Source: Macrostomum lignano
Taxonomy: Eukaryota
Length of the DNA stretch: 64,000 bases
NCBI GenBank assembly: GCA_002269645.1
Contig: NIVC01002245.1
Span: forward strand, 62,001 to 126,000
Direction of reading: 5' to 3'
The position numbers and the translations under genes are program-made. Under the pieces are notes generated by a model. It had not been told where the DNA came from, searched no databases, and saw only the letters and a program-made list of their open reading frames with translations. Below, in pieces: positions 1-16,557 of this stretch (positions within the stretch are counted from its first letter, which is position 1; each line of letters begins with the position of its first letter).

Positions 1-2049
1 AGCAGCAGCGCCTGCCAGCGGTTCAGCGTCAGCCCGACGGTCCGGCAGGCGAAACTGGGTAGCCCTCGGCTCCGCCTGCAGCTGCTGCTGGACAGAGTCA
101 ACTGGCTGACTTTCGCCGTCCACGGCGCCAGGATCAGGCGGAACGGGACCGGAGTTTGCCTGAGCAGGACTCATCTGCGACTGCTGGCGTCTCCGAAGCC
201 CAGCTGCTTTGCGCAGTTCGGCCTGGATGATCCCGGATGTCTGCTGGCCGACGGCGGCGGCGCCTGCAACCTGACGGCAGGCCTGCTGAACTGCGGGTCC
301 AGGAGCTTGGAGCTGAAGTTCATGTCAGCTGCGGTCACCCTGCTGTTCCCCAGTGTGAGCTGGCCGAGTTAGTTAGTCAGTTAGTTAGTTAGTTATTTAT
401 TTAGTTAGTTAGTTAGTTAGTTAGTTAGTTAGTTAGTTAGTTAGTTAGTTAGTTAGTTAGTTAGTTAGTTAGTTAGCTAGTTAGTTAGCTAGTTAGTTAG
501 TTAGTTAGTTAGTTAGCTAGTTAGTTAGTTAGTTAGCTAGTTAGTTAGTTAGTTAGTTACTTAGTTAGTTAGTTAGTTAGTTAGTTAGTTAGTTAGTTAG
601 CTAGTTAGTTAGCTAGTTAGTTAGTTAGTTAGTTAGTTAGCTAGTTAGTTGGTTAGTTAGCTAGTTAGTTAGTTAGTTGGTTAGTTAGTTAGTTAGTTAG
701 TTAGTTAGCTAGTTAGTTAGCTAGTTAGTTAGTTAGTTAGTTAGTTAGCTAGTTAGTTAGCTAGTTAGTTAGCTATGTTAGTTAGTTAGTTAGTTAGTTA
801 GTTAGTTAGTTAGTTAGTTAGTTAGTTAGTTAGTTAGTTAGTTAGTTAGTTATTTAGTTAGTTAGTTAGCTAGTTAGTTGGTTAGGTAGCTAGTTAGTTA
901 GTTAGTTAGTTAGTTAGTTAGTTAGTTAGCTAGTTAGCTAGTTAGTTGGTTAGTTAGTTAGTTAGTTAGTTAGTTAGTTAGTTAGTTAGTTAGTTAGTTA
1001 GTTAGTTAGTTAGTTAGTTAGTTAGTTAGTTAGTTAGTTAGTTAGTTAGTTAGTTAGTTAGCTAGTTAGTTAGTTAGTTACTTAGCTAGTTGGATTCTAC
1101 ATTTTCTTATATATTATTTTTTAGAAACCGGGTTGGTCTATGAGCGGTCAGTTCCAGCTAAGCGTCCCCCGCGAAGTTAACAAGCGCTGCATCAGAATGC
1201 AGCTGGTGAGCTCCGCCAATTTGACGAATTGATGCATTGTTTTGTTTAGGCGGGGCTTGGCAGCCGAATTACGGACTCAAACAGCATCCAAAGGGTGCAG
1301 ACTGATCCCTCCGTGCTCGCCTTCACCAGAACGCATCCGCCTGGCAGAGGCCGAATCAGTTCAGGAAGTTCTGGCTGGCTGACGCGGCTCAGGTTGACAG
1401 AAGCTTTAACCTGCTGCGGCTGGTGCAGCCCGAACGGTCGGCCGCCTGCCGCGTCGCCGACACCGTCAGCATCGATGCGGCGCCATCCGTGACTGGCGGC
1501 GGTGCCGAGCTCCATAAGCCGCTGCTGCTGCTGCTGCTGCCGCTGCTGCTCTTCCTGGCTGTCCTGACTCCGGTTGTCGGAGCGAAGCGGCCGCCGCCAC
1601 CGTCGCTGCTACTGATCGCCGCATCCGACGAGGTGCTCCGCCACGCCTCCACCGCTCGGCTGGTGCGGCGGCTGAGCAGGCGGTGCCGCCTCCGCGTCCC
1701 GAAGGCCGGCCTGAGCGACCTGCGGCCCGGCATGAGTCGCCGCTGCCAGCTGCTGCTCCTCGTGAGCCGCGGCCCCGACTTCAGTGACTTCCGCCTCGCC
1801 GACTGCCGCTCCGAGGTGGCGCGGCGTGAACTCCTGACCGTCCTGGAGACGGAGCGGCACCGCACGAGGCGGCTGCACCTCGGCGACGGTGGCGACTGCA
1901 GACAGTCCATGGAGCTGCCGCCCGCCCCGACAGAGGAGCTGATGGAGCTGGACGGCCCTGCGGAGGTCACCGCCAAGCTGGTGCTCCAGGAGCTGCGGCT
2001 GCCACCGCGGCAGAGCCGCTGGAGAAGCCGGACGGGCTTTGAAGTTTGA
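1..2049 (+). CDS. IL-17-receptor-like type I membrane protein with degenerate SEFIR/TIR-like cytoplasmic domain, copy 1 (5'-partial)
   Basis: Exons <1-354 (SSSACQRFSV...CFAQFGLDDPGCL...CGSRSLELKF), 1125-1205 (81 nt) and 1330-2049, all GT-AG and phase 0. TM segment [22 protein letters not shown] is followed by [44 protein letters not shown], which resembles SEFIR box1/alphaA/betaC (cf. IL17RA KIIVLCSRG). TGA at 2047-2049; AATAAA near 2658. Exon structure matches copy 2. Confidence 0.7.
367..1090. repeat. (GTTA)n microsatellite filling a receptor copy 1 intron
   Basis: Direct reading; GCTA/GTTG variants. Confidence 0.97.
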
Positions 2050-2582
2050 CAGACAGACAGACAGACAGACAGACAGACACTAAGACAGACAGACAGACAG
2101 ACAGACAGACAGACAGACAGACAGACAGACAGAAAGACAGACAGACAGACAGACAGACAGACAGACAGACAGACAGACAGACAGACAGACAGACAGACAG
2201 ACAGACAGACAGACAGACAGACAGACAGACAGACAGACAGACAGACAGACAGACAGACAGACAGACAGACAGACAGACAGACAGACAGACAGACAGACAG
2301 ACAGACAGACAGACAGACAGACAGACAGACAGACACAGACAGACAGACAGACACGGACAGACAGACAGACAGACAGACAAACAGACAGACAGACAGACAG
2401 ACAGACAGACAGACAGACAGACAGACAGACAGACAGACAGACAGACACTAAGACAGACAGACAGACAGACAGACAGACAGACAGACAGACAGACAGACAG
2501 ACAGACAGACAGACAGACAGACAGACAGACAGACAGACAGACAGACAGACAGACAGACAGGCAGACAGACAGACAGACAGAC
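2046..2582. repeat. (CAGA)n microsatellite starting at the receptor copy 1 stop codon
   Basis: Direct reading; source of the QTDR/LSVC junk ORFs. Confidence 0.97.
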
Positions 2583-3020
2583 ATATATACAATCTGTCAT
2601 AATCTACTATAATATAATATAATATAATTTGTATATAAGTTTTATATTATGTTATTGAATAAATTTTTCAACACAATAATTGCATGCTGTTGCCAACTGC
2701 TTAAAGGTTTACCAGATGTGTCCACTTAGCAGTTTTCCTCAGCGCAACCTCTTCATCATTCTCACAAAGAATCAGAGAAGTGCAGGTCACAGCCAAAGTT
2801 TTCCAAGTGCTCACAGATATTCCATGCATCTTGAAAGTTGACAGAGTTTATTTTTGAATAGTATGAAGCGCCATGCAAAGATCGGCAAAGTCTTCAGTCT
2901 CATTGGCATGCAGTGTCAACGAGCTGCCGATAATTACATGTATAAAATGTCTTCATCTTTTATAGGCAGCTGTATGAAGGACAACCCGCAGTCGGCAGAG
3001 CCTCTGAGCCCCGCCGCCGG

Positions 3021-15204: not shown

Positions 15205-15636
15205 AGGGGAGAGTAGGGAGAGAGTAGGGAGAGAGTAGGGAGAGGTGAGAGTAGGGAGAGAGTAGGGAGAGAGTAGGGAGAGAGTAGGGAGAGGTGAGAG
15301 TAGGGAGAGAGTAGGGAGAGAGTAGGGAGAGAGTAGGGAGAGAGTAGGGAGAGAGTAGGGAGAGAGTAGGGAGAGAGTAGGGAGAGAGTAGGGAGAGAGT
15401 AGGAGAGAGTAGGGAGAGAGTAGGCAGAGAGTAGGGAGAGAGTAGGGAGAGAGTAGGCAGAGAGTAGGCAGAGAGTAGGGAGAGAGTAGGGAGAGAGTAG
15501 GGAGAGAGTAGGGAGAGAGTAGGGAGAGAGTAGGGAGAGAGTAGGGAGAGAGTAGGGAGAGAGTAGGGAGAGAGTAGGGAGAGAGTAGGGAGAGAGTAGG
15601 CAGAGAGTAGGGAGAGAGTAGGGAGAGAGTAGGGAG
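15205..15636. repeat. 11-bp tandem repeat (GAGAGTAGGGA)n
   Basis: Direct reading. Confidence 0.93.
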
Positions 15637-15783
15637 TAGAAGGGAGAGCAGGGGAGAGTGGGAAATGAAGGAAAGCACCGTGAATAATAAATAGATGAAG
15701 AGTTGGGAGATGCTGGGGTGCTGACTGCTGAGCGGTCTACAGGACAGCCCACAGTCGGCAGAGCCTCTGAGCCCCGCCGCCGG

Positions 15784-16557
15784 TCACGGCGCCACAGCGC
15801 ACGACACGCCGATGCTGCCGAGGCTCTGCTGCAGCTGCTGGCCGTCTTCGCCCGTCCGCCTGAGCTCCAAGAATGGCAGCTCCACCCTGGCCTGTCCCGG
15901 ACACGGGCACCGGACATCCGGCAGCAGTCTGGGCAGCCTGGCGGCGTCAGCATTGATGAAGAACTGAGGCTGCGGCTGAGCTCGGGCCAACTGGCAGCTG
16001 ACGGGCCGGTAGAGCGCGCCGTGGCGGCCCAGCATGGCGTTGAGGCGGCGCAGGTCGGCGCCAGTCAGCGGCTCCGGCCGCGGCGGCCTCAGCGGCGGGT
16101 GCAGCGCGGCGCAGCCGGTTCCGTGCAGGCGGGTCACCAGACGGAGGCGCTGACCGCCCGCGCCGCCATCCAGCGGCTCCAGAGACGCCACGGGCAGGCG
16201 GGCGGGACGGCAGCGGGTGCTTGGCCGGCTGCCCCTCCAGCTTAGAGCAGTCGGACAGTGGCAGGTGGATTTGTAGCGCCGGGTTGGCAGCGAGTTGGCC
16301 GGCAGCTGAGTCGTGAGCTCGAATTTGTCGATGCAGACCCGATCGGCATTCTCCGCCAGATTCGGAGAATTTCGCACTCTTTGGCTAAGGTTGCAGTAAA
16401 ATGTAATTGTTAATGTTGTAGTCTTGTAGTTGTCAAATCTCAGGTTCGCGCTCCCGGCGCCCCAGCCGCAGGCAACGTGCTCAGTCTCGGATCTGAGCTG
16501 CTCTGCCTCTAGTAGCAGCAGAAACGACAAAATCGAAGCCAAGCAACTTGGCGACAT
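15784..16557 (-). CDS. Secreted tandem IL-17/PTTH-like cystine-knot protein, copy 2 (257 aa, intronless)
   Basis: ATG at 16557 opens a signal peptide (MSPSCLASILSFLLLLEA). Shares ACGWGAGS and Cys positions with copy 1 (RVCI, SLPTRRYKSTCHC, RCRP). From ARLPVASL onward it is near-identical to copy 1. Confidence 0.65.
   Translation of the reverse strand: MSPSCLASILSFLLLLEAEQLRSETEHVACGWGAGSANLRFDNYKTTTLTITFYCNLSQRVRNSPNLAENADRVCIDKFELTTQLPANSLPTRRYKSTCHCPTALSWRGSRPSTRCRPARLPVASLEPLDGGAGGQRLRLVTRLHGTGCAALHPPLRPPRPEPLTGADLRRLNAMLGRHGALYRPVSCQLARAQPQPQFFINADAARLPRLLPDVRCPCPGQARVELPFLELRRTGEDGQQLQQSLGSIGVSCAVAP

Follow-up and report, generated by a model that had tools for sequence, protein, structure and literature searches.

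IL-17 cytokines work as dimers, and the receptor sites are located at the dimer interface. In invertebrate IL-17s, single knot disulfides have been lost, and many IL-17 receptors (IL-17Rs) escape domain models (Chen et al. 2024, PMC11087794). Multi-domain IL-17 proteins were listed by Huang et al. 2015, with B. floridae 132638 and C. teleta 209749 (PMC4517768), and tandem IL-17 clusters that contain ligands only are found in molluscs, echinoderms and amphioxus (PMC8353272, PMC4517768). Herein, a stretch of 64,000 nucleotides (nt) of Macrostomum lignano DNA (assembly GCA_002269645.1, contig NIVC01002245.1, positions 62,001 to 126,000 of the forward strand) was analyzed; it is called the window, and all positions below refer to it. 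Self-BLAST of the window revealed a convergent gene pair that is present twice in tandem, at a spacing of about 12.1 kb. Each copy, or unit, consists of a gene for a membrane protein (the "receptor" genes R1 and R2) and a gene for a secreted protein (the "ligand" genes L1 and L2). Judged from the sequence, the duplicated two-gene unit is real, an IL-17-like ligand is plausible, and the receptor assignment is unproven.

The genes follow each other in the order R1 (+), L1 (-), R2 (+) and L2 (-). R1 is partial, and its start lies 5' of the window. The two genes of each unit lie tail to tail. The distance is 0.97 kb between the R1 stop (2047-2049) and the L1 stop (3021-3023), and 1.63 kb in unit 2, from about 14150, where R2 corresponds to the end of R1, to the L2 stop (15784-15786). 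The poly(A) signals AATAAA for R1 and L1 are found at 2658 (+) and 2847 (-), which indicates that the unit 1 genes terminate about 190 bp apart. When the copies were compared by tblastn, E values from 9e-17 to 1e-84 were obtained. These values and the two tracts of 97% identity described below indicate duplication rather than chance. An old tandem duplication, in which the convergent two-gene module was copied as a unit, is supported because each gene has its paralogue in the other unit, with the order and orientation of the pair preserved. The predicted exons and open reading frames (ORFs) are as follows, where TM stands for transmembrane and aa for amino acids.

1 to 354, plus strand: R1, end of the large ectodomain exon, open in frame 1, with the donor GTGAGC at 355.
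1125 to 1205, plus strand: R1, 81-nt phase-0 exon (KPGWSMSGQFQLSVPREVNKRCIRMQL), with a polypyrimidine-AG acceptor and a GTGAGC donor.
1393 to 2049, plus strand: R1, last exon, with the juxtamembrane segment, the TM segment and the Arg-rich cytoplasmic tail of about 150 aa; stop at 2047-2049.
3021 to 3839, minus strand: L1, intronless ORF of 272 aa, with AATAAA (-) at 2847.
6554 to 6640, plus strand: R2, exon 1, with the ATG and the signal peptide; donor GTGAGT, predicted in-phase join to exon 2.
11181 to 11271, plus strand: R2, exon 2, 91 nt, ending in phase 1; AG acceptor, GTAGGC donor.
11370 to 11917, plus strand: R2, exon 3, the main ectodomain exon, 548 nt; donor GTGAGT.
13294 to 13374, plus strand: R2, 81-nt phase-0 exon, with the acceptor ...cccctccag and the donor GTAAGG.
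13506 to 14150, plus strand: R2, last exon (TM and tail); the frame runs on to 14918.
15784 to 16557, minus strand: L2, intronless ORF of 257 aa with its ATG at 16557.

The receptor models were built from the DNA. At all junctions the acceptor is of the polypyrimidine-AG type and the donor reads GT(G/A)(A/G)G, the frame of R2 exon 2 is continuous with exons 1 and 3, and the 81-nt exon is in phase 0 at both ends in R1 and R2 alike. A TATAAA sequence is present at about 6477, about 75 nt 5' of R2 exon 1. By inspection, the protein has a type I single-pass topology with a signal peptide exon, one poly-Leu TM segment and KRPPPP on the inside; the poly-Leu segment followed by KRPPPP is present in both R1 and R2. 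The signal peptide is followed by a Cys-containing, beta-rich ectodomain (about 280 aa), one TM segment and a tail of about 150 aa that is rich in Arg. The amino acid identity between R1 1-354 and R2 exon 3 is 46-50%, and six Cys and an RRN(S/G)T N-glycosylation sequon are invariant between the two ectodomains. A 1-nt indel is located just after LRLPP in R2. The stop at about 14150 is missing there, and the frame past the indel reaches 14918 via (GACA)n, with about 250 aa of (DRQT)n. The indel may be genuine, reflect a sequencing error or mark the onset of decay.

L1 is composed of a signal peptide, an N-terminal extension, an N-terminal IL-17-like domain with the pattern C-x27-CxC ... C ... 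GC-A-A, a Pro-rich linker, and a C-terminal IL-17-like domain with the pattern C-x28-CxC ... SC-A-V. By inspection, the hydrophobic N-termini MHPPLILSLLLALLLAAELSA and MSPSCLASILSFLLLL are the signal peptides of the two ligands. All 11 mature cysteines of L1 are conserved in L2 (11/11). The N-terminal portion of about 105 mature residues is about 35% identical between L2 and L1, and the C-terminal portion of about 146 aa is near-identical, with 4 aa differences clustered at its N-terminal end. An earlier reading of the DNA letters, the original prediction, had described tail-to-tail receptor and ligand genes 1.0 and 1.6 kb apart, an 81-nt phase-0 exon and a TM segment shared by the receptors, signal peptides and a Cys framework shared by the ligands, and a two-gene module duplicated as a unit. 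The gene models, in which the 81-nt exons (1125-1205 and 13294-13374) both have canonical AG/GT sites, and the paralogy of the units bear out these features.

Two tracts are homogenized between the units, as measured by self-BLAST.

1402 to 2583, with its partner at 13506-14686, no strand assigned: tract 1, 97.0% identity.
2978 to 3459, with its partner at 15741-16216, no strand assigned: tract 2, 97.3% identity.

The first base of tract 1 is exactly the first base of the last R2 exon (exon 5), and tract 2 contains 43 nt of the 3' untranslated region and the 3' half of the ligand. Synonymous divergence (dS) was 0.03-0.06 inside the tracts versus 0.93-1.8 outside, a sharp switch within the genes, and all exons outside the tracts are saturated at synonymous sites. 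The introns and the intergenic DNA gave no alignment between the units, and the similarity of the intergenic DNA between the tracts is not above that of shuffled sequence. The pattern of gene conversion between tandem paralogues, a change from saturated to near-zero dS inside genes with unalignable flanks, is thus found at this locus. The occurrence of 97% identical tracts amid exons with dS of at least 0.9 and non-aligning introns and intergenic DNA indicates conversion after an old duplication rather than misassembled haplotypes. The divergence pattern points to recent gene conversion, in two short tracts or in one patchy tract. The acceptor of the R1 last exon at 1393 lies 9 nt upstream of the tract start at 1402, which adds Val-Asp-Arg relative to R2.

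Nonsynonymous divergence (dN) was compared with dS for the individual parts. The values were dN 0.43 and dS 0.93 for the ectodomain exon (R1 versus R2), dN 0.67 and dS 1.8 for the N-terminal half of the ligand (L1 versus L2), and dN 0.014 and dS 0.058 for the TM and tail exon (R2 versus R1). The dN/dS ratio was 0.24-0.47, below 1 in every part compared, including the old parts. Judged by codon substitution, both genes are under purifying selection. The G+C contents at the first, second and third codon positions (GC1/2/3) were 0.71/0.56/0.85 in L1 and 0.76/0.51/0.86 in the receptor tail exon, and the exon of a DAO-type gene in the same window gave 0.69/0.51/0.87. By this measure the predicted exons are coding-like, as are other genes of the window.

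The identity of the ligand was evaluated by profile comparison. Among 24,736 Pfam models, IL17 (PF06083) was the only family reported, with 12.4-13.4 bits and E 0.1-0.2, where the gathering threshold is 24 bits. The match was obtained with L1 only, and only when the query contained both halves; L2 gave no Pfam IL17 match. A hidden Markov model (HMM) of IL-17 was made from 22 mussel IL-17s (part of the PMC8353272 supplement) and 6 human domains. By hmmsearch --max, the C-terminal half of the ligand scored 13.4 bits and the N-terminal half of L2 8.7 bits, each reached by 0/3000 shuffles, and the N-terminal half of L1 scored 5.2 bits (3/3000 shuffles). By hhalign, the C-terminal domain matched the IL-17 profile with a probability of 81% and P 1.3e-5 over 56 colinear columns, with the alignment running through FFINADAARLPRLLPDVRCPC ... 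LELRR ... IGVSCA. Both N-terminal halves jointly gave a probability of 24.5% and P 8e-4 over 85 colinear columns, which begin at Cys1 and extend as far as the terminal G-C. Reversals, shuffles and left-out genuine mussel IL-17s were run as hhalign controls against single sequences. The observed scores were 31.3 (C-terminal half) and 22.9 (N-terminal half of L1); 0/120 shuffles scored as high, and the reversed ligand sequences scored 7-11.

The C-x27/28-C-x-C spacing is common to both ligand halves, each of which has one terminal G/S-C. Neither half has retained the third Cys of C.C..C or the second of the terminal CxC, and one or two knot disulfides lack a partner cysteine. Mussel IL17-18, -19 and -21 show the same cysteine losses (PMC8353272 supplement). 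BLASTP of half 1 against half 2 detected no significant internal repeat, and the two-domain reading is based on two observations: each half matches the IL-17 profile, and the Cys spacing is common to both. The ligand is fairly likely to be a tandem two-domain, cysteine-reduced and degenerate IL-17-like protein, as distinct from a demonstrated family member. The original claim of an IL-17-like ligand is moderately supported, by a weak yet reproducible match of both halves to IL-17 that stays under the family thresholds.

The receptor was examined in the same way. In Pfam, neither SEFIR (PF08357) nor any other family was reported at E<=10 for the spliced receptor, the tail or the ectodomain, and sequence and profile searches of the PDB gave only chance Fab matches. 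A 9-sequence SEFIR HMM was made from IL-17RA and IL-17RB (verified by 4NUX, 9OT1 and 3VBC), IL-17RC, IL-17RD, Act1 and mussel receptors (three). The tail scored 0.2-0.5 bits against this HMM, and 0.2 bits was equalled by 10/5000 shuffles; hhalign of the tail against SEFIR gave a probability of 1-2.4%. Only one stretch of 30 residues in the tail aligns to SEFIR betaA-alphaA-betaB, and the invariant SEFIR Trp is missing. For a double FN3 ectodomain (PF16556/PF16578-type), there was no Pfam match and no relative in the PDB profile search, and hhalign of the ectodomain against four mussel IL-17R ectodomains gave a probability of 0.07%. When the TM and tail exon was compared exhaustively with 1.84 billion representatives by phmmer, the only match was one spurious translated tandem repeat. 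The membrane protein is not filed as an IL-17R because neither of the defining features tested, SEFIR and double FN3, was found in it. The SEFIR-like tail of the original prediction was therefore not confirmed, and of its IL-17-receptor-like assignment the topology alone was retained. The topology and sizes of the membrane protein fit an IL-17R-type receptor. On these sequence features, homology to IL-17R is doubtful.

Several repeat features of the receptor genes were also observed. The R1 tail (1585-2007) holds two similar segments, at tail residues 8-38 and 55-80. Each consists of a hydrophobic strand (LLLIAAS / LLLLVSR) and a helix ending in C-R-x-x-V (RRCRLRV / DCRSEVA), both align weakly to SEFIR alphaA-betaB, and the pair may be an internal repeat. 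In both units (GACA)n begins at the receptor stop codon (2048-2583 and 14151-14901), and it occurs again inside a forkhead gene (21942-22190). R2 intron 1 (6641-11180, 4.5 kb) consists mostly of tandem repeats: a 14-mer of about 142 copies at 6663-8644, starting about 20 nt past the donor, a 16-mer at 9163-9773, a 17-mer at 10254-10446 and a 33-mer at 10936-11113. An additional exon could be hidden in this intron. A homologous receptor intron is nearly all microsatellite in both units, but the repeat differs: (AGTT)n at 367-1091 in R1 (about 181 copies) and (TAC)n at 11926-13274 in R2 (about 450 copies).

The explanation put forward here, with less than even confidence, is an old duplication of an IL-17-type cytokine gene together with its cognate receptor gene, followed by patchy conversion. 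A unit of about 12.1 kb with the two convergent genes was copied in an old tandem duplication. One gene encodes the type I membrane protein described above. The other, intronless gene encodes a secreted protein of about 245 aa, in which two cysteine-reduced cystine-knot domains of the IL-17 type would follow each other and could form an intramolecular, single-chain pseudo-dimer, and its odd cysteine count would leave space for an additional intermolecular bond. Two short conversion tracts would later have re-homogenized the TM and tail exon of the receptor and the 3' half of the ligand gene, and the ectodomain and the N-terminal part of the ligand stayed divergent. The secreted protein would be a divergent IL-17-family cytokine, and the membrane protein would be its cognate receptor, with an ectodomain and a tail degenerated past profile detection. 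The units would have signaling or scaffold parts in common and recognition parts that differ. A divergent ectodomain and N-terminal portion of about 100 ligand residues, combined with an identical C-terminal domain and TM and tail, would be as expected if the neighbors were cognate, with recognition specific to each unit and an output common to both. That the locus goes further and forms a linked, co-diversifying cytokine-receptor specificity cassette, in which each unit's single-chain, two-domain ligand would act with its own receptor to give pair-specific inputs and a shared intracellular output while gene conversion would hold the ligand C-terminal domain and the receptor TM and tail identical, is considered distinctly unlikely.

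Several results weigh against a cytokine and its cognate receptor. For the ligand, the Pfam IL17 score is far under the gathering threshold (12.4-13.4 versus 24 bits), the left-out mussel IL-17-23 and IL-17-5 reach 42.5 and 71.3 versus 31.3 and 22.9, and the beta2-beta3 region of the C-terminal domain is unusually short. No relatives of it were found in large protein collections (E<=10), the PDB or metagenomes, and its AlphaFold2 model from a 2-sequence alignment is unusable, with a predicted local distance difference test (pLDDT) of 31.5 and a predicted template modeling score (pTM) of 0.18. The receptor shows no SEFIR, no IL-17R ectodomain similarity and no PDB relative, and the AlphaFold2 model of its tail is likewise unusable (pLDDT 45.1). 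Homologues of either protein are absent from the matches in 5.8 billion or 1.84 billion sequences, where the word-indexed searches with full L1 and spliced R2 may be saturated by poly-A/L words and the search with L1 minus its signal peptide is not. Of the human reference sequences (IL-17A-F, IL-17RA, IL-17RB, IL-17RC, IL-17RD and Act1), only IL-17RA and IL-17RB were verified by the PDB. The adjacency of the two genes originated once and was then copied, which makes it a single observation rather than two. The same mosaic is equally expected of two unrelated neighbors struck by conversion.

One alternative is a ligand that is a divergent IL-17-type cytokine next to a functionally unrelated membrane protein, the two being together only via one 12-kb segmental duplication. 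This is somewhat unlikely. The negative outcome of every receptor-family test and the single historical event behind the adjacency favor it, but both genes have the same unusual mosaic of diverged 5' or recognition parts and independently homogenized 3' parts. The topology and sizes of the membrane protein also fit the IL-17R type, and IL-17R domains often escape profiles (PMC11087794). Both genes may instead stand outside the IL-17 system, as a lineage-specific secreted Cys-rich protein and an orphan membrane protein, partners or not; we regard this as unlikely. The ligand signal would then be a short motif resemblance (D..R.P..l..a.C.C), and it is true that the core of the strongest alignment is about 23 residues, that the Pfam score is half of the cutoff, that no database relatives exist among the searches above, and that structure prediction gave no support. 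However, three segments match the same profile region, and the colinear alignments reach the terminal G-C motif and exceed all shuffles and reversals. Cys1-x27/28-CxC is present in both halves, and IL17 stands alone among all the Pfam models.

The ORFs could also be non-functional, as pseudogenes rich in GC or as copies in decay. A frameshift takes the R2 tail into a microsatellite, several frames are open in GC-rich DNA, and exact-product look-ups of five ORFs gave no annotated protein match for ORFs of the window. This is nevertheless highly improbable in view of dN/dS below 1 throughout, old parts too, the conserved cysteines, sequon, splice sites, TATA box and poly(A) signals, and a GC3>GC1>GC2 periodicity like that of other window genes. 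An assembly artefact, with two haplotypes or a collapsed repeat put in tandem, would account for the two tracts of 97% identity, but its probability is close to negligible. The flanking exons have dS of 0.9-1.8, the intron microsatellites differ, and the intergenic similarity is at the shuffled level. Haplotypes misassembled in tandem had been named with the original prediction as a way in which it could fail; outer parts with dS of at least 0.9 and unalignable introns and intergenic DNA speak against them.

The window is metazoan nuclear DNA, as indicated by GT-AG introns and by a split forkhead gene and fibrinogen-C, DAO-type oxidoreductase, mariner and gypsy-type sequences identified with Pfam. 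Micro- and minisatellites are very numerous across it, and tRNA and Rfam scans found no tRNA genes or Rfam families in the window. A retroelement remnant lies between the units at 4116-5325, with a reverse transcriptase (RT) fragment on the plus strand (RVT_1, E 1.8e-12) and a CCHC-type motif, seen by inspection and without a Pfam match, in the minus-strand ORF 4178-4372. A forkhead gene at 20870-23405 (-; Pfam Forkhead E 4e-15 and 4e-17) carries a poly-Gln tract and is interrupted by an intron inside the forkhead domain. A mariner/DDE_3 transposase ORF is located at 24345-25541 (+), and an ORF or exon with a fibrinogen C-terminal domain at 26681-27289 (-; E 1.3e-22), about 10 kb from the ligand and receptor units. 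The fibrinogen C-terminal domain family is frequently tied to invertebrate immunity. At 29315-33394 (+), a GC-rich (60-69%) gypsy-type element resembling a long terminal repeat (LTR) retrotransposon encodes gag-like DUF7041, RT, RNase H and integrase in overlapping frames. Minisatellites of 39 and 24 bp break up the exons of a DAO-type flavin adenine dinucleotide (FAD) oxidoreductase at 39658-41488 (+), and one of 28 bp lies between the CCHC zinc-knuckle ORFs (ZCCHC9-like) at 61201-62915 (+).

A full-text literature search retrieved no report in which IL-17 ligand and receptor genes are linked or duplicated together, and no such unit is known among vertebrate loci. Should the pairing hold, the locus would be a case in which a cytokine of an animal is passed on and duplicated jointly with its receptor. 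The mosaic would then separate "specificity" parts from "signaling" parts and suggest how orthogonal ligand-receptor channels originate. A single-chain tandem IL-17 and an IL-17R with a SEFIR degenerate past recognition would also be added to the known proteins. If the membrane protein is unrelated, the interest of the locus would be modest: it would offer another very divergent IL-17-like family and clearly exemplify conversion in patches.

Compared with known systems, the ligand resembles the reduced-cysteine invertebrate IL-17s (mussel IL17-18, -19 and -21; types T1B/T1C, PMC11087794). It is secreted and has Cys1 ... D..R.P...(E/D)A.C.C, a V/L-rich beta3 and a terminal G-C-x motif, and the losses it shares with them are as in GCTAV, GCTPV and KCRCPRQ. 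Unlike them, it scores lower, under the Pfam cutoff, lacks PW after Cys1, has a very short CxC-beta3 loop in the C-terminal domain, and carries two domains per chain with 11 Cys in total. More than one IL-17 domain per polypeptide is also the character of the multi-domain IL-17 proteins (PMC4517768), but those pass the Pfam and SMART thresholds and have no described link to a neighboring receptor gene, whereas both ligand domains here are degenerate. Like IL-17 receptors (double FN3, TM and SEFIR), the membrane protein is type I, its beta-rich ectodomain measures about 280 aa, and its cytoplasmic domain, about 150 aa long, opens with an hhhh(A/S)SD strand-helix-C..V motif that aligns to SEFIR betaA-alphaA-betaB. 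Unlike them, it has no significant SEFIR or FN3 similarity and no invariant SEFIR Trp. Local tandem duplication is shared with the IL-17 clusters of molluscs, echinoderms and amphioxus; the repeated unit here is a ligand plus a membrane protein, whereas theirs are ligands only. Linked ligand-receptor specificity loci are known from the Brassica S-locus (SCR/SRK) and the basidiomycete pheromone and receptor loci, where allelic haplotypes are maintained by balancing selection and suppressed recombination. As in those loci, a gene for a small secreted Cys-rich ligand adjoins a gene for a single-pass receptor candidate, and the presumed recognition parts diverge. Unlike in those loci, the copies here are tandem paralogues in an animal, and the non-recognition parts appear to have been converted.

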